Shown piece after piece: positions 15,675 to 35,500 of a stretch of 64,000 bases of DNA. A model generated the notes under the pieces. That model saw only the letters and a list, made by a program, of their open reading frames with translations. It searched no databases and had not been told where the DNA came from. Made by a program: the position numbers and the translations under genes. Location: assembly GCA_009103225.1 (NCBI GenBank), contig RHPI01002262.1, positions 598,317-662,316 of the forward strand. The letters run 5' to 3'. Numbering within the stretch: the first letter of the stretch is position 1; each line of letters opens with the position of its first letter. Source of the stretch: Chlorokybus atmophyticus. Lineage: Eukaryota; Plantae; Mesostigma and Chlorokybus algae.

Positions 15675-16657
15675 CACAACCACGACATGCACCGCCGCAG
15701 AGGGAGCTTCTGTGCGTGCCGTACATGCATGCGTGTGTGTACTGACAAAACCCTAAGCCGGCAGTTGACAAGACGGCAGTAGGAGGCTGGCGGCGATGGC
15801 GGCGGGGGTGTGGGTGAAGCGGGAGGGGGAGTGATGACGCACGCATGCATGCATGTCTAATGGGTATGGGCAGTAGAGAAGGTAGGTAGCAGCTAGGTTG
15901 GCAGCCCGGTGGTTAATAAGAGTGCTTCATGGTGTGGTGAGTCGACCGCTCATGCATGTGTGTGTCACACTCTCATGCGTGTCACAATCCTTGCACTCTA
16001 TTTATTATACACTCCATGCCCTGGTTGGTGCGGCCATCCCATGCCAGAGGCTAGTCCAGTCCGCTCGTGCAGTTGAGGTGAGCGGCTGGCTACCCTATGT
16101 TACGGCATAGGGCGTGCATGTCACCGTGCTATGGTGTGGTGTGGTGTGGATAGGTGGGTGTTTGACCGGGAGCACCCTGCATGTGTAGTTGCCTAGTTGA
16201 TACCGAGAGTTGGTGCCCACCCCACTAGCCATGCATTGCAATGCACAAGACGAAGTCACAAGTGAAAGTTGACATGGGGAGCAGCGAAGTCTGCCCGTGT
16301 CATGAAAGTAGACGCACACAACCACGACATGCACCGCCGCAGAGGGAGTTTCCGTGCGTGCCGTACATGCATGCGTGTGTGTACTGACAAAACCCTAAGC
16401 CGGCAGTTGACAAGCCGGCAGTAGGAGGCTGGCGATGGCGACGGGGGTGTGGATGAAGCGGGAGGGGGAGTGATGACACACGCATGCATGCATGTCTAAT
16501 GGGTATGGGCAGTAGAGAAGGTAGGTAGCAGCTAGGTTGGCAGCTTGGTGGTTAATAAGAGTGCTTCATGGTGTGGTGAGTCGACTGCTCATGCATGTGT
16601 GTGTCACACTCTCATGCATGCCACAATCCTTGCACTCTGTTTATCATACACCATGCC
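15675..16657. repeat. Direct duplication of a ~345-bp segment (15675-16020 and 16317-16657) separated by ~300 bp of unique sequence
   Basis: Near-identical copies, for example CACAACCACGACATGCACCGCCGCAGAGGGAG and GTACTGACAAAACCCTAAGCCGGCAGTTGACAAG in both; the duplicated ORFs 15646-15846 and 16300-16485 mirror this. Confidence 0.9.
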
Positions 16658-22419: not shown

Positions 22420-22885
22420 GCTACCTGACTGCAGATAGCATTGCTTGTTAAACAGAGTTGATAAGCAGGTTCACGCATGACCCGCACACAGGTTCACACG
22501 TGCAACGTAATTGAGGCCAAGCACGCATGACATGCATCGATACATATAGCGTATCCACTATGCAAGCAACTCTTGAAGTTCAGTTGGTTGGGTTGGTTGC
22601 TTTTTGTTGGGCGACAATGCCGCAACATACTGGTCTCTATGGACTTACAGCTGGCAATGCATGCAAGGTCAAGTCGAGGAGGAGGCATGGTCAATTCTTG
22701 TCGTGCTTCTTACGGCAAGACTTTTTAGTCTCAACCAACAAGGTGTGTGCGAGGCCCGCGTCTCAAGCAGCTGTCGCAGTCAGCCGACCATGCCGACCAC
22801 CTCAAGCCTGCAGCAGGTAACTATTGACTGGGCTACAGAGACAACCTCACAAACATCTTCTAAAAAAGAAAGCCCCCCCTCCCCC

Positions 22886-23511
22886 NNNNNNNNNNNNNNN
22901 NNNNNNNNNNNNNNNNNNNNNNNNNNNNNNNNNNNNNNNNNNNNNNNNNNNNNNNNNNNNNNNNNNNNNNNNNNNNNNNNNNNNNNNNNNNNNNNNNNNN
23001 NNNNNNNNNNNNNNNNNNNNNNNNNNNNNNNNNNNNNNNNNNNNNNNNNNNNNNNNNNNNNNNNNNNNNNNNNNNNNNNNNNNNNNNNNNNNNNNNNNNN
23101 NNNNNNNNNNNNNNNNNNNNNNNNNNNNNNNNNNNNNNNNNNNNNNNNNNNNNNNNNNNNNNNNNNNNNNNNNNNNNNNNNNNNNNNNNNNNNNNNNNNN
23201 NNNNNNNNNNNNNNNNNNNNNNNNNNNNNNNNNNNNNNNNNNNNNNNNNNNNNNNNNNNNNNNNNNNNNNNNNNNNNNNNNNNNNNNNNNNNNNNNNNNN
23301 NNNNNNNNNNNNNNNNNNNNNNNNNNNNNNNNNNNNNNNNNNNNNNNNNNNNNNNNNNNNNNNNNNNNNNNNNNNNNNNNNNNNNNNNNNNNNNNNNNNN
23401 NNNNNNNNNNNNNNNNNNNNNNNNNNNNNNNNNNNNNNNNNNNNNNNNNNNNNNNNNNNNNNNNNNNNNNNNNNNNNNNNNNNNNNNNNNNNNNNNNNNN
23501 NNNNNNNNNNN
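22886..23511. other. Assembly gap (N run)
   Basis: Run of N, flanked by C-rich sequence. Confidence 0.99.
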
Positions 23512-24447
23512 CCTCCCCCTCCCCTTCTTCCTTCCCAACCACCACAAGTAAAACAAAACCCAAAGAACAACAACCACGTGGAAAAACAAGAAACAGCAGA
23601 GGGGGAAGCAACGAGCTGAGCGTTACAAGACCTAACAGCTACAAGTAACGCATTTCAATGCAACAAAGTTCCCAAAACGTCATGCAAGTTGAAGCTCAAT
23701 TTATCCTCTGTGACAGCTGCAACTGTGCTGTGTGCATCAAGCAGCATAGGCAGCTTCAAGGTGTGCAAGCTTTGTGAGCACAAACTACATGCCTAGTTCA
23801 AGAACAAGAATGCCTAAAGTCCTAAAAGCAGCAGATCGCGTGTCAAACCAGCAAGCATGCAATGTGCAACTCACACCCACAGCTTCAAGCTCCAAGCTTG
23901 CAACGCATGCCAGACCGCGTCCCCGTTTGCTACACCGCTTCAGCAAGCTTGAGCATATACACATGGCAAGCAGGTTCGGCAGCGTCAGCACCGACACCGC
24001 AACACAATCAAGCTCTGACAAATCAAGCAAGCAAGCTCGCTCCAAGCTCCACGCTCCACGCTTCAAGCTGTCCACGCAAAAGCTGCAAGCTCCAGCTTCA
24101 TGCGCTCAACGCAACAGGCTGTAGGGCTGCTAGACTTGGAGCCCCAGTAGCATTTGGACCAATGCTGGCCTGGAGCGCAGCAGTCCTGCCCCAATGCATG
24201 CTCCAGGCGGCAGTCGCCAGGCAGGGGCTGGCGATTTGAAGCAAGTTTACACAATAGACTCTAAATCCCCTTGTTACTCATGCATCCTGTTCGACCGAAC
24301 CAGGCTTGATGAACTCTAGTTCAGCAAGTGCAGAATCGAGTCTGGGTGAAAGCTGCTGTCAGGCCATGCGGCCACGTCAACAATCTCCAACCCTAAGATT
24401 GGTCTGGGCGGCGGCAGCGGCGGGTGGGGGCGAGGTTTGCGTGCGTG

Positions 24448-26842: not shown

Positions 26843-27804
26843 AACTACAGGTTCATCACCAGCAGTATCATTTGTTCAATGTGCACGGTTATGCAATGCT
26901 TATCTTTCAGATACAATTTTGGGCTACTTCTTTATATGTTGAGGGCACCCAATGTCTTTCCAGATATTGCACCCTGGTTTCTGCGGCTGTTATGACGATG
27001 TTGCAGCTGTACAACACATATCCTATGTTGTCATGTTGCCGTTGTCATTTGTACACTCGTTTGGGACATACAGGCTTGAAACGTCCTGGGCATGTGCACA
27101 GAAACACGTGCACATGTTGTCAACTGTTGCCCATCAATGCAGACATGATTATACAATTCTGTAAACTGCCATTATAAATTATAAGGCAAGATAACGCTAT
27201 TGGAACCTTGCAGACGCTGGGCACAATGCGCTGGCCTTCCACCTTTTCTTTCGGTCTTGTACTTTTAGACTGATGCTTCCCACATTCTGTCACTCACCTA
27301 AGCTATGGAGCTTGCACGGTGTAAGCTGATCTATATGGCAGATGTCAAGGATATATAGCAGCGAAGCACATGATGTGATAAGTTTTCATACTCACGTGCA
27401 ATAAGCGATATACTGCTTAACAAGCACATTAACGAGTAGAAGACGTGGAGGGGTTGTAGATGTAGCAAGCCTCGCACGCTACTGTGCGTGATGAGTAGAC
27501 GGTAATAGGGTGGACAGCTGGTCGAAGTAGCGAGTCGTCTGTCATCATTGTCGCTGTGCTTGTATCACATGGTCATTTTGCTGTAGCAAGCACTGCAGGC
27601 ACAGCACGGCATGCCACAGCATGCCATGTAGACGTTGTTGCTACTATCGTTATTGCCAGCAGTGGTTAGCTAGATGAGAAAGAGAGACCCAGAGAGAGCG
27701 GCGGTGCGGTAGTACTGCTTAGGTTGGGGCAGCATGAAATGGTTTAGCAGCAGTCGTCATTTCATGACTGGCAAGGGATTGTGCTTGCCCCCCCCCCCCC
27801 CCCC

Positions 27805-28221
27805 NNNNNNNNNNNNNNNNNNNNNNNNNNNNNNNNNNNNNNNNNNNNNNNNNNNNNNNNNNNNNNNNNNNNNNNNNNNNNNNNNNNNNNNNNNNNNNNN
27901 NNNNNNNNNNNNNNNNNNNNNNNNNNNNNNNNNNNNNNNNNNNNNNNNNNNNNNNNNNNNNNNNNNNNNNNNNNNNNNNNNNNNNNNNNNNNNNNNNNNN
28001 NNNNNNNNNNNNNNNNNNNNNNNNNNNNNNNNNNNNNNNNNNNNNNNNNNNNNNNNNNNNNNNNNNNNNNNNNNNNNNNNNNNNNNNNNNNNNNNNNNNN
28101 NNNNNNNNNNNNNNNNNNNNNNNNNNNNNNNNNNNNNNNNNNNNNNNNNNNNNNNNNNNNNNNNNNNNNNNNNNNNNNNNNNNNNNNNNNNNNNNNNNNN
28201 NNNNNNNNNNNNNNNNNNNNN
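27805..28221. other. Assembly gap (N run)
   Basis: Run of N preceded by a C homopolymer. Confidence 0.99.
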
Positions 28222-30297
28222 CAATTAACAGGTGAAGAACCCCCCCCGCCCCCGCCCTCCTTTGGCTGGTGCGCTAAGCCAGCCTTGCTCTACGGCTGGT
28301 AGGGTCCCGCGATTGCATGGGCGCAGTAACACCCAAGCAAGTTGAAGGCTCCCTACCATCAAGAAGCGGAAGGCTCAAGCGTTTGAATGCACAGCACACA
28401 GGAAGGCGCCAACAGGTATCATTCTCTCCGCTTGGCGCGCATCGAATGAGCGTGAGACAATGCTAGCTTGTTGCACTTCAAAACTCAATGGGTCCGCGCT
28501 CTTCATTGTCTGCTGCTGCTCTGGGTGCATGTGGGTCATGATCACTTGCATGGTCTTTCTGGCTTCTGCATTACAATGGTGACTGCCTGCCCGGTTTGCT
28601 CGTATTGCATGCTAGGGAGGGGGGTTGCCTTTGCATCTACAGACAATTGTCGAGAGGCAGCTTAAGAGCATGCCCAAAAGTAATGCTCATAGGGTCTGAC
28701 ATGGTTGCAATTGTTGGCGCTGAGAGCAACAGATGGAGCATTGAGAGAAAAACATGCAGCATTGCAATGGGAGAATATAACTCTGTGCCCACCAGAGCCC
28801 AGCCTTTTCAACTCTCATGCAATCATGCATAAGTACATGACTGATGCACATCATGCGTGCCCTTGGATCCTTCACATGTCCACCACACATGGACCATGTT
28901 TACAAGTCTGCACACAATGTGTACACCCAGGTCTACTATGCAGACAATCACATGCACAGTGCTCCCTTCGTGGAGAGGGAGAGGTGCACATGCAAAGGGA
29001 GGCTTAGGAACATGTTCTTTATTAACTCTGGAACGGTGGGAGCTTCATGGTGCAGCTTGTAGCAGACCTTGGAGCTTCCAGAACGGTGTCACATGGCAGC
29101 TCCTACACAACTCTCACAAGCAACAACCCAACATAGGGCAGGGGAAGGCCCCTTTAACACCACTTCTTTATCACCAAGTACCCATATCTAGTGTGTGGAA
29201 GGACCTTGCTAACACCCAGCTAAGGCGTGCACAACAATGCCAGCGCCGTCTTGAAAGTGTACAACAACAACTCCCCTTGCCTTGGGCGTGCCAACGCCTA
29301 TAAAGCCCCTCAATGGCAGCTGATGCTGACGTAGATATCTAAGTGCCCTTCCTGTCAGGAAGTTCCTGATGCCTTCCCACTTGGCCACACGTTCCCTAGA
29401 AAGGCATATTCCCTTAGGGACGTGTGCTGACCGTACAATTGACGTTCAGCACACTACACAGTGCTTCAACGGCCATGTGGCCATCATGGCAACTTGTCAC
29501 ACACTTAATGTGACTCACTCAGCATTGTCACATCATGCCATGTGCTATATATGTCACACCTTTACTCACGCTTGACGCGACATGCAGCTGTAATTTACAT
29601 GTGCATACCAACCACTTTCTTTGTACAGTACTGACTTCATATACTGTGTATGACACTTGCCACAACATGCGACAGTGTCTCGCATGTGAACATACACATG
29701 CTCACGCTGACCAGCTCTGTGCTAGCTGCTTATCAGTGCATTGCACAGTTCAACTTGCCCAAGGCTCATGAGCTCAAGGACTGACAGTATGAGCGAGCCA
29801 CTTATGCACATACCTTAAACAGTTGAACTACTATATAGTCATGCTGTCATATGTCGCAACATAGCAGCTGAGAGTGATCATGCCTTGCCTGTTAAGCGTG
29901 ACATAGAAACTCGTGTTGCGCAAGTTTCAGCTGTTACAGATGAAGGCTGCTAGAGTTCAAGCAAAGTGTTGTGTGGCAAGCATGGAAACGGTGAGCACCT
30001 ACGCCATCTTGGTTATAAGCTTAGAAGGGCAAGGGTGTGCAAGTGCTCATGCCCAACACACTACAATGGCATTTGCCTGCAACATATGATGTGCGCAACT
30101 TCTGCATGCCAGTGGGGTGTGCAGATTTCAGATTTCCTTCTTCACGCCTTGTAGGTGCAATTCACGCTTAGCTTCAGTATGCAAGCAGGTTGCTGGCCAA
30201 TGCTTTGTTACAAATTCAATGCTTGTATGAGCGCATACTCATTGTCACACCCGTCCACTCACCCCTCAACAGAGTGACATGCTGTGGTCAGCCTTAC

Positions 30298-30823
30298 TGT
30301 AACGGGAAGGTACATTACCACAAATCGACCATAAAAGCACCAAGTCTTTTGTGGTCGAGTGGGCTGTGACATTGGTATCGGAGCTTGAGACCCGGGTTCG
30401 ATTCCTGCCTTGCACACGAATTCCGCGGTCGTTGTTTCTCGATCCAATAATATCGTAAATGGTCACTTTATGAGTGCCATCATCGATGGGTCGCGACTTG
30501 CCTAATGGCAGTCGCGCCGAACTAACCAGTTCAGTCGGCGCGGCAGGGCGCGACCTGCCTATCGCGGCGACGCGACCTGTGGGGCCGGCAGCGTTTCGCT
30601 ATGCGCGCGTTGACCGGTATGGGCCTAAATTGGCCGGTCCTTGGACGGTGGGGCCGGTGACCGACCTTAACAAACCCCTTGGGTAATTCCCCAGCTGATG
30701 GCCGCCAGCTGCCGAGGACGTCAGCGTTCTTAAGTGGGGCGGAATGTAACGAGAAGGTACATTAAGTTACCACAAATCGACCATAAAAGCACCAAGTCTT
30801 TTGTGGTCGAGTGGGCTGTGACA
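30298..30823 (+). mobile_element. TRIM copy A (complete)
   Basis: 5' LTR 30298-30371 (TGTAAC...GTGACA); PBS TGGTATCGGAGC at 30373-30384 (canonical tRNA-iMet PBS is TGGTATCAGAGC, so one G-U wobble); PPT AAGTGGGGCGGAA at 30732-30744; 3' LTR 30745-30823. No coding capacity. Confidence 0.88.
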
Positions 30824-30824
30824 T

Positions 30825-31330
30825 TTGGTGCTTTTATGGTCGATTTGTGGTAATTTAATGTACCTTCCCGTTACATTCCCCCCCACTTAAGAACGCTGAC
30901 GTCCTCGGCAGCTGGCGCTCATCAACTGGGGAATCTTCCCAGGGGTCTGATTTAGGGTCGGTCACCGGCCCCACCACCCAAGGACCGGCCAATTTAGGCC
31001 CATACCGGTCAACGCGCGCATAGCGAAACGCTGCCGGCCCCACAGGTCGCGTCGCCGCGATAGGCAGGTCGCGCCCTGCCGCGCCGACTGAACTGGTCAG
31101 GTCGGCGCGACTGCCATTAGGCAAGTCGCGACCCATCGATGATGGCACTCAGAAAGTGACCATTTACGATGTTATTGGATCGAGAAACAACGACCGCGGA
31201 ATTCGTGTGCAAGGCAGGAATCGAACCCGGGTCTCAAGCTCCGATGACCAATGTCACAGCCCACTCGACCACAAAAGACTTGGTTCTTTTATGGTCGATT
31301 TGTGGTGATTTAATGTACCTTCCCGTTACA
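30825..31330 (-). mobile_element. TRIM copy B (3' LTR truncated at the dimer junction)
   Basis: 5' LTR 31330-31252; PBS-like TGGTCATCGGAGC at 31250-31238 (1-nt insertion); PPT AAGTGGGGGGGGAA immediately before the 3' LTR; only the first ~51 nt of the 3' LTR (30875-30825) are present. Confidence 0.85.
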
Positions 31331-32552
31331 CTTACCCAGATGTTGGCGCTGCATGCGCTGAAGCCTTCGCAGGCTTTGCGCAACGTACTACTACTAATAG
31401 TTGACTTGCATTAACATAGCGTGTATGACAGAGCAACGCAGCATATCATATCTGGCATGTCGCACAATGATCAATAACAATGCTTGGTATGCGCAGGTTG
31501 CAATGGCGGCCTCTACCATATCCACTGCCATCATCTGTATTGTTTTTAATGGAGTTGTGATTGAGCCAATCGAAACTTGTATAAGTACAAGCAAGAGGTG
31601 CAAAAGACAGCTTGAGAGCCTGCAGCTCATGCCGCATGATCATTATGCGAGTCCTGACGGCAACAGGACTTGCATACTGTCGCATATGTCCGAGGTGAGA
31701 CACATACATGCAGCTTTGCAAGCGGAAAAGGTGGTGCTGCTCACAATGGAGACGTTACGAATGAAAGCAGAGCGGCGCGCAGCATATGTATGCAAGCAGT
31801 GAGCACTTGCGCCGATCTAGTTTGTCTCATGCATATGTTGTTAACCTAATCAAAATGCTTACCTCTGTGAACAGCTTTAGATAATTGGAATTCATGGCTT
31901 GTGTTTATTGAGCCATGAGTGCACTGTATGTAAACGATAAGTAGTGAATATTGAAGTCCGGTGGTTTGAAATGTGATGGCAAGGGACACTCTACTGAAAG
32001 TTACGCAGCCTTGAAGCGCTCGCAAGTTTGCGCAGTCACCTTTTCAAACCTTGCTCAAGCCTTCAGAATGTACAACACCAACATGGTTGCACCCAACACC
32101 CAAGCAACATACACTCTGTACCATATACAGTCGTGAAGTGCAGTCCATGGCCATGCACATGTGCTGCGCTCACCTGCAGTCAGCTATGCTGCTACGACTG
32201 GCGCAGTCCTCTCATCTCGGATATGGCTGGCATGCCTGCATGTCATATGCAAAGACGACGGAAAAATGCTGCAAGTCACTCACACAAGCACAACACGCAT
32301 ACAACTAGCAGCACTGTACACTAAGCTAGCCAGCGGGCAGCGCTGGTGGTAGCGTTTGTGCTTAAAAGACATCAATGGGAACAGTAGCAGTCTGCATAGA
32401 CTACTGACAAGTTGTTACCGCGATGTTTCTTGAAGCTCAGATGACTTGCCCTCTATTGACCATTACACTGCTACAAGTACTGCAATTACTTCAACCTGTC
32501 CTAACTCCACCCGGCACTATCACTTGCCAACGCTAGCGCATGCCAATGATAC

Positions 32553-35500
32553 TTAACTGCGTAGAGCAAAACTCAGTACCTCATCCGCGGCTCGGGCCGG
32601 CTGTTCCAGGTGAGGGACATGCCCACATTCGGGTATCATCACAACCTTGCAGCTGGGCAGAACTTCTGCAAATCGCTGCACAGACAAGAGCTTTACCAGA
32701 CAAGTATGTGCGGCATATGGGTTACAACGAGGCATTGTCGCATGCGCGCATTTGCCGAGGGTGTTTTGAGACTGGTTGAATGCTGCAGCACATATGTTGC
32801 GACTACAGTAGCAAACACTCTGCAGTTGGCGAAGCAGACACACCTGAGCATACTCCGGCTTGAGTATGCCATCATTCTCACCCCACAAAACCAACGCATC
32901 ATGCGTCACCTACCATACAACACACGCACACAGTCACCTATGCGCGTAGTGGTGAAAACTGATAGGCTGCCATGTTATATGCTAAAATGACCAACCAGTA
33001 CATGAAACTTGGGAGGAGCAAATCATTTGTGTGCATGCCTCGTACCTGGCTCATAGAGGATGTGACACTGTAGCCTCCGCTGCGCATGAACTCAATGTTA
33101 GCATCGCGCCATCCCGGCAAATACGTGTGCAACCTCCCAACCTGCATGCAAGGAATGTGAGTCCACTACAGTAGCACAACATGTGACGAATGCATGCATG
33201 AAAATACCACTATACCGTACCCGAATTGCATCAGTGGTAGCCAACTTCTGATCATGATAAGCCATCCTGTTCGCCATGGACCTCAACGGCCAGCTTCGCA
33301 GAACCTCAATCTGTGCACGCGTTTGATAAGTTTAGCAACCTTGCCTGTCATTCAAGCAGTAAGCAACAAGCATTGGTGTGACATGCATACCCCTGCTGTT
33401 GCCAGGGGTCTCGGGAGGCTTTTCATATTGCCAACGCCATCGATGAAGCCCTGGGCATCTATAAGCACCAGTTTGTGAACCTGCGTGGCTTGAGGACACA
33501 AGCCCAAACATGATGACCACCATGGCAACCATCATGAGCCAAAAGCGTGTACACTCTCATCACATCGAGCTTATGACTTACCGCATCCGGATGGTTGACG
33601 GCGAAGTCGATGGCAGCCGCGCCTCCCAAACTGGCACCAGCCAGCACCATAGGCTTTCCAATGTTGGACCTCCAAAACTGGTATTGCACAAGCATACAAA
33701 GTTGTGTCAATCACGAGAAGCGCTAGACAGTGAGTCCATTGCGAGAAGTACAAAGTACAGTCAGTCGCTGTGTGCTGTGTGTCATTCAATTCACGAGGCA
33801 TTCGCATGCAAACAGAACAAATGCACACAACAACAACAACGACAACATTGGTCTTCACAACACACCTCATACAGCAGCTCTCGCTTTGCCACAGGGCCCC
33901 AGTCCCTAAGGCCCGTCTTCGCGTCCACGCCGTTGAAGCCCCAGCCGAGGAGGTCCACCGCCCATGCCGCGGCGCCGCGTGCCGTCAGGACAGGATGCAG
34001 CCGCCGAAACTCTAAGCACGAGCTGCGCGGCACACTCTTGTCCGTTTATCACAATGGTCATCATACTGATAGAGTAGACCAGCATGACCGCAGGTGCTGG
34101 CACACACACGCATGCTGACTTGCATTTTGACCAAACTATGCTTCCATGTGGTCTACTTACAGGTATGCACTGTGTGTATGCACGGCGACGGTAAGAGAAT
34201 ACTGAAGTCACACCCACTGCATGCTGACCTTGACCTGTACGTAACGAACATGTACACTTGCTCCAGCAACTACTGTTGATGTGGTGGTGTACAACAGCTT
34301 CATGTGTAGCTGTTGTACAAGCATTATCAAGTACACTGAGCTATATGTTGCACTCTTCAGCTGACACAAATTGTGAACTGACAAAGGAACACATTCTAAT
34401 TAATGCTCAGAAAAAAGGAAGTTACTAGCAGCAGCAAAATGCAATGACAAAGCATATGCACAGCAACGGGGCCAAACAAACCATCTGCGTGCCTGTCGAA
34501 GCCATGAATGAGCACAATCGGATGGTACTTGGACGTTTGCAGCGCGTCCGCACTTTCCGGCCCAACAACAGATGCCTCGATGATGCTGTCAGCAAGGGAC
34601 GTCTGCGCAGCAAACGCAATTAACAGGTGAAGAAGGATGTTTTACCAAGTTAGCAAGTTAGCAAATGTTACGTGTTTGCTTGGGAACAGCTTGAAACGAA
34701 CCCACTAGCAACTAACTGACAGCACGCCACGCATGCAGACACGCGCACGCGCAGCGTCGTTTGCAACTAGCACACCCATATGTACAGCAAACTTGTCCAT
34801 ATGGCGGCCACGTTAAAAAGCGAGTGACAGTTGTTGCCATCGCAGCTATCACGAGAATGATTGCATTTGCATGCATAAATGTGTGTGCATGTACATAATC
34901 GTGTGTCAGCGCGTTTTATGAGTATCTTTATAAGTATTCAATGGCCACACCCACACAGTCAGTGAAGTCAGTCAGCCTTTGCAGAATATACGACTTGATG
35001 GTGATGACCTTCTCAGATATCAACCTTGATGAATCGTGTTAGTACCTTACGCATACCATCAACTGACCTTCACGGGGACGCGCGTAATGCGGCTGGCCAT
35101 GCTGCGAGCTGCGGGCTCCTCCAGCTCCTCCACTTGCTTGGGCAAAAAGTGCGGGAACTGCGTGCAGGGATGACCTCAGTTAGCGTCATCATCACACAAG
35201 CTTTGTGATGATGATAATGTGGTTGTGTGTACAGGCAGTGTCAATGTGCACGTAGCACTGTCCACAGAGCGTTATTTCCAAGCCTACTTTAAAGGTCTCG
35301 ACTGAAAACGTTTGTGCACATGGTGGCCCTGTATATGACAAGAAATGAACTCAAGTACTCACCCGGACTGGGATCAATGCTTCAACTAAAGGTTTTGAAG
35401 GAGAGTTATAGTTGGTGACGAGGATTATGGCAAGTAGAGTAACAACAAGCCAATGGCAGGAATGTAATGTGACTGAGCATTTGTAGAAGACTGTCTCAAC

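Follow-up and report, generated by a model that had tools for sequence, protein, structure and literature searches.

In a 64,000-nucleotide window of the Chlorokybus atmophyticus genome (contig RHPI01002262.1), sequence inspection places a tail-to-tail pair of TRIM-like units at 30298-31330. Each unit has the order LTR, tRNA-type primer site (PBS), purine tract, and LTR, and the inverted pair is bounded on either side by an LTR start (TGTAAC). Every coordinate in the initial annotation of this locus was recovered, and the features are, by window position, as follows.

30293..30297: left copy of the target-site duplication (TSD), CTTAC, abutting the TG of the unit A 5' LTR
30298..30371, + strand: unit A 5' LTR, 74 nt, TGTAAC...GTGACA, lacking 5 nt of the other three LTRs
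30372..30384, + strand: unit A spacer T (30372) and PBS TGGTATCGGAGC (30373-30384), from sequence inspection
30385..30731, + strand: unit A internal region, non-coding (ORF search blank), with the B-box-like motif GGTTCGATTCC at 30395-30405
30732..30744, + strand: unit A purine tract AAGTGGGGCGGAA, immediately before the 3' LTR
30745..30823, + strand: unit A 3' LTR, full-length (79 nt); a 13-14 bp hairpin lies at ~30777-30810
30824: junction base T, the same as the single base separating LTR and PBS
30825..30875, - strand: unit B inner (3') LTR, only LTR bases 1-51 kept
30876..30888, - strand: unit B purine tract AAGTGGGGGGGAA, directly before TGTAAC
30889..31237, - strand: unit B internal region, non-coding, with a B-box-like motif at 31217-31227
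31238..31251, - strand: unit B spacer T (31251) and PBS TGGTCATCGGAGC (31250-31238), with one inserted C
31252..31330, - strand: unit B outer (5') LTR, complete, 79 nt
31331..31335: right copy of the TSD, CTTAC, abutting the unit B outer LTR

The two CTTAC copies are in direct orientation and abut the LTR termini exactly, a match with a probability of 0.00098 by chance at this fixed offset. The single CTTAC pair around the whole dimer and the two LTR-start outer ends, both claimed previously, can be seen directly, as can the anatomy of the units. The arms (526 and 506 nt) are 96.8% identical over 497 aligned columns, with an exact stretch of 120 nt common to both and sequence change of ~2% per arm. 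There are 19 differences between the arms, and these are concentrated at 30645-30702, within 60 columns (scan P 0.007). Unit A is complete, and the inner LTR of unit B is broken in the loop of the strong LTR hairpin, exactly after ACCAA. Read-through transcription of the dimer would yield an RNA that folds into a ~480-bp hairpin. We rejected a candidate MIR8562 microRNA at 30685-30935 (101 bits versus a gathering score of 211), as the match reflects the long hairpin only.

An inverted repeat of this kind raises the question of an artifact in which fragments from different copies of the family were linked by a short-read assembler or gap closer. By its appearance, the scaffold comes from a short-read assembly: the Chlorokybus genome was assembled with SOAPdenovo/GapCloser at k=85 (PMC7027972), the window holds N runs of 1, 626, 1, and 417 nt that are typical of such scaffolds, and the 120-nt stretch common to the arms exceeds k. 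However, the words spanning the junction are not something that a de Bruijn assembler can create, and within the window the 40-mer there occurs only once. Were two loci falsely joined, the 5-mers at both LTR ends would match only about once in 1,000 cases, and the arms differ by 3%, indels included. We therefore regard an artifact as improbable. The 120-nt stretch leaves only a flip of the inner segment ambiguous, which changes the owner of the complete LTR and not the layout.

Each arm carries the LTR-retroelement hallmarks described in the initial annotation: TG...CA ends, a PBS that starts with TGG one base after the LTR, and a purine tract immediately before the 3' LTR. As in TRIMs, the direct terminal repeats are short (74 and 79 nt in A; 79 and 51 nt in B), the purine tracts lie against the 3' LTRs of both units, and each unit is below 1 kb and without coding capacity; the longest ORF, a spurious one of 97 aa, returned no relatives in a protein search. 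The PBS of unit A agrees at 11 of 12 positions with the plant initiator-Met PBS as given in the initial annotation, and it may be complementary to the 3' end of the host's own tRNA, which the window does not encode. Because CTTAC flanks only the whole pair, so that neither unit has its own 5-bp TSD, the pair is a composite of two TRIMs and not itself a TRIM. DIRS-like retroelements have inverted terminal repeats, no TSD, a tyrosine recombinase, and an internal complementary region; membership in that group was rejected, since here the 5-bp TSD is clean and coding capacity is absent. The opposite orientation of the units under one TSD is that of a TA-TRIM with inverted units (PMC4717578).

The LTR contains an A-box-like motif, and an exact B-box consensus follows just after the PBS, so that the boxes straddle the LTR/PBS border. 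The LTR elements of the TRIMp3 group (Cassandra, Helenus, and Ajax; PMC10886601) are likewise small and non-coding and bear a promoter signature of the Pol III type. In Helenus, however, a tRNA-like sequence lies within the LTR (PMC10886601), whereas here the B box is outside the LTR, and the LTR contains no recognizable tRNA-derived sequence of the TRIMp3/Helenus type. ARAGORN found no tRNA genes in the window, and Rfam gave no tRNA match even at E values up to 10. Inverted forms or dimers of TRIMp3 are not mentioned in PMC10886601 (Kojima 2024).

All four occurrences of the LTR core in the window, versus zero expected, lie within the dimer, and the PBS and B-box motifs were not found elsewhere in the window outside the dimer. 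Neither an LTR 20-mer nor a PBS/B-box 27-mer gave any match in metagenome scans, and an exact look-up of a neighboring exon ORF returned none either. These results bear on an earlier proposal that the dimer may be an undescribed mobile configuration. That the palindrome itself is the transposing unit, either as a member of a fold-back/TIR-type family or as a dimer copied as such, would account for the terminal inverted repeats and the TSD, but each arm keeps the retroelement order of PBS, purine tract, and direct LTRs, and the center of the palindrome is asymmetric by 29 nt. Furthermore, its read-through RNA would be without repeated R ends, unit B is without the distal part of its 3' LTR, and no second copy appeared in the window or the metagenome scans. 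We judge this explanation very improbable. Without terminal redundancy or a second copy in the window, the idea of a new mobile unit is unsupported, and the existence of an inverted TRIM pair under one duplication in maize means that the layout is not new. The dimer as a unit cannot retrotranspose; arm A may still behave as an ordinary monomer.

The sequence found at the junction of the two units is ACATTTGGTGC. It reads ACA-T-TTGGTGC, with three T, where the LTR/PBS border reads ACA-T-TGGTATC, with two. The T at 30824 is neither the target-site base (C) nor part of the unit B LTR. The inner end of unit A is thus the LTR plus T, as at the LTR/PBS border, which fits an untrimmed U5 end of a linear cDNA; likewise, T instead of the target C after the inner CA of unit A fits a cDNA end that was never strand-transferred. 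As a single base, however, this T would be expected by chance with a probability of 0.25. The retained end of unit B starts with TTGGT, matching the LTR/PBS border with a shift of one base (~1% by chance). Among the four LTRs, five sites vary, all as singletons, with no A-specific or B-specific states, so the four LTRs may have been identical at entry. Read outward, the U3 end (GTTACA) differs from the U5 end (GTGACA) at only one of six bases, and integrase could therefore plausibly accept two U3 ends.

Given the single direct 5-bp duplication and the U3 ends at both outsides, the best reading is one integrase event on one symmetric substrate, as the initial annotation proposed. We conclude that the dimer is most likely the fossil of two DNA copies that entered the chromosome in a single event; this reading of the origin is drawn from a single locus. 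As to how the copies came together, we put at about even chances that host end joining linked the U5 ends of two cDNAs, with integrase acting on the two U3 ends either earlier or later. In such a sequence of events, two linear cDNAs of the same TRIM family, probably copied from the same or near-identical RNAs, would be linked by host end joining from U5 end to U5 end. One U5 end would have been intact, consisting of the LTR and the single T that precedes the PBS, and the other would have been short by 28 nt of LTR plus the terminal T, having broken in the LTR hairpin loop. If joining came first, integrase would have inserted a dimer cDNA by the U3 end at either side; alternatively, integrase may have inserted two separate cDNAs in concert, each by its U3 end, after which the cell would have repaired the break. 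Both orders yield an identical product, and it is the order of the steps and the joining enzyme that we infer.

End joining fits the junction: ACAT/TTGGTGC is explained by a blunt or 1-nt-overlap join without any extra event, and a blunt join of the complete unit A end (LTR plus T) to the 28-nt shortened unit B end requires no extra assumption. The clustering of the arm differences within 60 columns favors two templates over self-copying of one molecule, although it could alternatively reflect local hypermutability, arm-to-arm conversion, or short-read consensus polishing. That retroviral integrases can insert two donor DNA molecules jointly is established in vitro (PMC2857682 and its refs 28 and 30-33). 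In the literature that we searched, no case of two-donor integration of an LTR retrotransposon in vivo was found.

The main rival to end joining is that a palindromic cDNA formed during reverse transcription and was then integrated through its two U3 ends, which we think unlikely, if clearly the foremost of the alternatives. A plus strand with the start of the PBS copy (...ACATTGGT) would pair with ACCAA in the LTR hairpin loop, either on another plus-sense strand or on its own, and would then be extended. The hairpin-loop ACCAA is the complement of TTGGT at the LTR/PBS border, the unit B LTR ends exactly after ACCAA, and the single-stranded loop would be accessible for pairing; all four LTRs could have been identical at entry, and template switching is the accepted origin of tandem complex LTR elements (PMC1950507). 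The TTGGT match, shifted by one base, hints at pairing with a PBS-bearing strong-stop strand and speaks against a blunt join; such pairing would mean an event at the stage of reverse transcription or one of microhomology. The predicted junction, however, is ACATTGGTGC, and the one found has one T more, so that the T run must afterwards have gained 1 nt. The strand transfer at TTGGT/ACCAA put forward in the initial annotation fits the complementarity and the break point and falls short by one T in the predicted product: with three T at the junction versus two at the LTR/PBS border, the TTGGT overlap is out of register. In addition, the rest of the PBS copy would be an unpaired 3' flap that reverse transcriptase could not remove, further unusual steps would be needed to complete both strands across the junction, and the clustered arm differences (P 0.007) speak against one molecule copying itself.

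The junction base also bears on whether the pair arose from two independent insertions. The second unit would have inserted in inverted orientation into the right CTTAC, and a deletion of ~33 bp would afterwards have taken the middle CTTAC and 28 nt of the unit B inner LTR. Small deletions are common, as are TE insertions nested in or next to one another, and with ~2% change per arm, the element is old enough for a deletion. Yet the same 5-bp target must be hit twice, because any other target leaves no CTTAC beside the unit B outer LTR. Moreover, a contiguous deletion leaves ACA/TTGGTGC, one T short, and the inner end of an integrated unit A should show the target C, where T is found. We hold this history to be highly unlikely. 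Two further candidates were rejected. Fold-back duplication after integration would give an inverted flank, GTAAG, but CTTAC is found on the right in direct orientation; this candidate is likewise contradicted by the T, not target C, after the unit A CA. Nested insertion of unit A into the unit B LTR is contradicted by the lack of any LTR remainder to the left of A.

The closest precedent is an inverted TRIM pair in maize under one TSD, CTTCA (AC220956:117725-118283), validated by PCR and sequencing (Gao et al. 2016, PMC4717578). As here, two miniature LTR retrotransposons are inverted within one 5-bp TSD, but the maize pair is from a land plant and belongs to a family unrelated to the present TRIM. 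In PMC4717578, the pair is confined to one figure panel, arrays as a class are attributed to homologous recombination, and no junction anatomy, U3/U5 end identity, or mechanism is given. We found no mechanistic analysis of inverted LTR-element dimers in the literature, where the maize panel was the sole precedent found. Complex tandem three-LTR elements (PMC1950507; Zeng and Sun 2018, 10.1101/452573) resemble the dimer as multi-unit structures formed before integration and flanked by a single TSD; their units, however, are direct and share an LTR, whereas here they are inverted and meet at an LTR-to-truncated-LTR junction. The word "inverted" is absent from PMC1950507 (Sabot and Schulman 2007). 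Retroviral joint integration (cited in PMC2857682) also uses the ends of two molecules, whether alike in type or not, and the stagger is correct and yields the TSD length of the family; it was observed in vitro with short donors, whereas the present case is a genomic locus.

The dimer is thus well preserved as an example of its kind; the kind of element is not new. One insertion, an inverted interior, an end-joined inner junction, and potential hairpin RNA are also features of inverted T-DNA or transgene repeats and of L1 twin-priming products. Their machinery differs from that of the present dimer, as T-DNA has no integrase and L1 uses target-primed reverse transcription. T-DNA hairpins are mentioned in PMC11624286, where it is also suggested that long inverted repeats might give rise to LTR hairpins able to initiate the silencing of transposons.

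Taken alone, the locus adds one more case to a layout known from maize. Its single TSD and its untrimmed central U5 end nevertheless record clearly, in a natural setting, that a substrate ending in U3 on both sides can be inserted by an LTR-element integrase. We tentatively suggest, as a possibility of modest weight, that in C. atmophyticus short, abundant TRIM cDNAs may routinely be inserted by integrase complexes assembled on the ends of two molecules, with the cell sealing the free ends. Such insertion may extend to U3/U3, U5/U5, and U3/U5 combinations and even to a TRIM with a Gypsy element. If true, it would be the in vivo counterpart of a two-donor reaction known only in vitro, and through it LTR retroelements would regularly give rise to inverted-repeat loci making hairpin RNA.

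Two inverted TRIM-like units lie tail to tail at 30298-31330 between direct copies of CTTAC (unit A is the + strand copy and unit B the - strand copy). The LTRs, PBSs, purine tracts and flanks that the initial annotation described were all located, as follows.

Features of the dimer, in window coordinates
30293-30297 and 31331-31335: TSD copies, CTTAC in direct orientation, adjoining both outer LTR ends
30298-30371, +: unit A 5' LTR, 74 nt
30373-30384, +: unit A PBS, TGGTATCGGAGC, with one T between LTR and PBS
between PBS and purine tract, +: unit A body, non-coding
30732-30744, +: unit A purine tract
30745-30823, +: unit A 3' LTR, complete, 79 nt
30824: junction base, a single T separating the units
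30875-30825, -: unit B inner LTR, LTR bases 1-51 only
30888-30876, -: unit B purine tract
between PBS and purine tract, -: unit B body
next to the outer LTR, -: unit B PBS, as in unit A plus one inserted C, preceded by one T
31330-31252, -: unit B outer LTR, complete, 79 nt

The LTR core has four matches in the 64-kb window, all inside the dimer (0 expected), and the PBS is likewise found in the dimer alone, as is an exact B-box consensus, GGTTCGATTCC, which follows the PBS at 30395-30405 and recurs in arm B at 31217-31227 (two matches in the window versus 0.03 expected). It lies ~43 nt downstream of an A-box-like motif inside the LTR, TGGTCGAGTGG (30352-30362; mirror copy in arm B). These boxes resemble those of TRIMp3 elements (PMC10886601), but ARAGORN and Rfam found no tRNA. 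As RNA, 30340-31290 is predicted to fold into a single long hairpin (-950 kcal/mol, z = -54), to which we attribute a below-threshold Rfam match, of low sequence identity, to the microRNA precursor family MIR8562 (30685-30935; 101 bits against a gathering score of 211). The dimer lies in apparently intergenic DNA ~1.2 kb beyond the 3' end of a putative alpha/beta-hydrolase gene, whose last exons the ORF at 32553-32909 (-) resembles by eye (…ECGHVPHLEQP…). Elsewhere, two direct copies of ~340 nt (15675-16012 and 16317-16651) share 93-94% identity, with starts 639-642 nt apart, and may represent either a small LTR-type element or a local duplication.

That a single integrase event inserted the pair by means of two U3 ends (LTR starts), as had been proposed from the sequence, is well supported. 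Both outer ends are U3 ends, and the probability of equal 5-mers beside two element ends fixed as TG/CA is 0.00098 by chance. Furthermore, the base after A's inner CA is T, whereas the target base is C and B's next LTR base is G (B strand). This T is the base between LTR and PBS, hence the last base of untrimmed linear cDNA, and agrees with an end that integrase never transferred, as a single base with a chance of 0.25. In outward reading, GTTACA at the U3 end and GTGACA at the U5 end (the LTR finish) differ by a single base of six, which makes the use of two U3 ends plausible; in vitro, retroviral integrases routinely insert two donor molecules together (PMC2857682). Under two independent insertions, the second unit would have had to land precisely in the CTTAC of the first and ~33 bp would then have had to be lost; the product would still be one T short of the observed sequence. 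Fold-back duplication after insertion is excluded because the flank duplication is direct; a folded-back copy would read GTAAG.

The scaffold resembles a short-read assembly after gap closing, and its N runs in the window (2211, 1 nt; 22886-23511, 626 nt; 25332, 1 nt; 27805-28221, 417 nt) agree with the short-read assembly by SOAPdenovo (k=85), GapCloser and Pilon that has been published for Chlorokybus (PMC7027972). Poly-C tracts adjoin 2076-2092 and 27788-27804, and N runs create spurious long ORFs at 22604-23648 and 27734-28302. A false join of two loci is a caveat, but it would give no matching TSD, and the junction words must be present in reads. Because one exact stretch common to both arms (120 nt, 30525-30644) exceeds k, the assembler could have flipped the inner segment; this would exchange the owner of the complete inner LTR between arms and leave the layout unchanged.

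A and the reverse complement of B agree at 96.8% of 497 aligned columns and are separated by 19 events (adjacent changes merged). All five variable sites in the four-LTR alignment are singletons, and neither unit's LTR pair shares a state against the other, so the four LTRs could have started out identical, each lineage having since changed by ~2%, as far as the alignment indicates. The insertion is not a recent one. The 19 events are unevenly spread, nine of them being concentrated in a 60-column stretch (30645-30702; scan P = 0.007). The clustering is mild evidence for two source templates rather than a single self-copied molecule, but it may also stem from local hypermutability, arm-to-arm conversion or polishing of the assembly.

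At the inner junction (ACA-T-TTGGTGC), A's LTR is complete and B's stops after ...GCACCAA, within the loop of an LTR hairpin (13-14-bp stem; DNA fold -15 kcal/mol, z = -4.0 to -4.4; 30777-30810 in A's 3' LTR). The same hairpin is predicted in each LTR, and ACCAA in its loop is the reverse complement of TTGGT from the LTR/PBS border; TTTT at LTR bases 55-58 lies four bases beyond the cut point. In the simplest account, A's full cDNA end (LTR plus T) would have been joined to a B end lacking 28 nt of LTR and the terminal T, with at most one T of overlap, in the manner of classical end joining. The leading explanation, with about an even chance, is that host end joining linked the U5 ends of two cDNAs, either ahead of integration or once a two-donor U3/U3 insertion had left both of these ends free. 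Second and distinctly less probable is a switch during reverse transcription, in which TTGGT of the border pairs with ACCAA in the loop, as the initial annotation suggested. The complementarity is present, and an out-of-register match of 4-5 nt would arise by chance in roughly 1% of cases; however, the pairing predicts ACATTGGTGC, one T off, and requires one later T gain. Since gaining one nucleotide in one particular T run is about as unlikely as the chance match, the junction by itself does not separate the two routes, and the inner join may reflect either end joining or a strand-transfer error.

TRIMs are a familiar class of element, green algae included (PMC4717578), and the inverted-pair layout is not new: the same paper pictures it in maize under one TSD, with no analysis of its ends, junction or origin. 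The dimer is a clear fresh example of that layout. Tandem composites under one TSD have been ascribed to template switching or pre-integration recombination (PMC1950507; 10.1101/452573), but those arrangements are direct, whereas the units here are inverted. It has been proposed that LTR-element copies placed head to head or tail to tail may supply LTR hairpins at the onset of silencing (PMC11624286).

The further suggestion of a new mobile configuration is unsupported. Searches of the 64-kb window, two metagenome scans and protein searches with spurious ORFs yielded no second copy. By reasoning from its structure, the dimer would be unable to move as a unit, because read-through RNA would begin and end in LTRs of opposite sense (A's sense, B's antisense), with no repeated R for first-strand transfer, and because the distal 28 nt are missing from B's inner LTR. 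Arm A, which retains all parts of the monomer, may behave as an ordinary TRIM.
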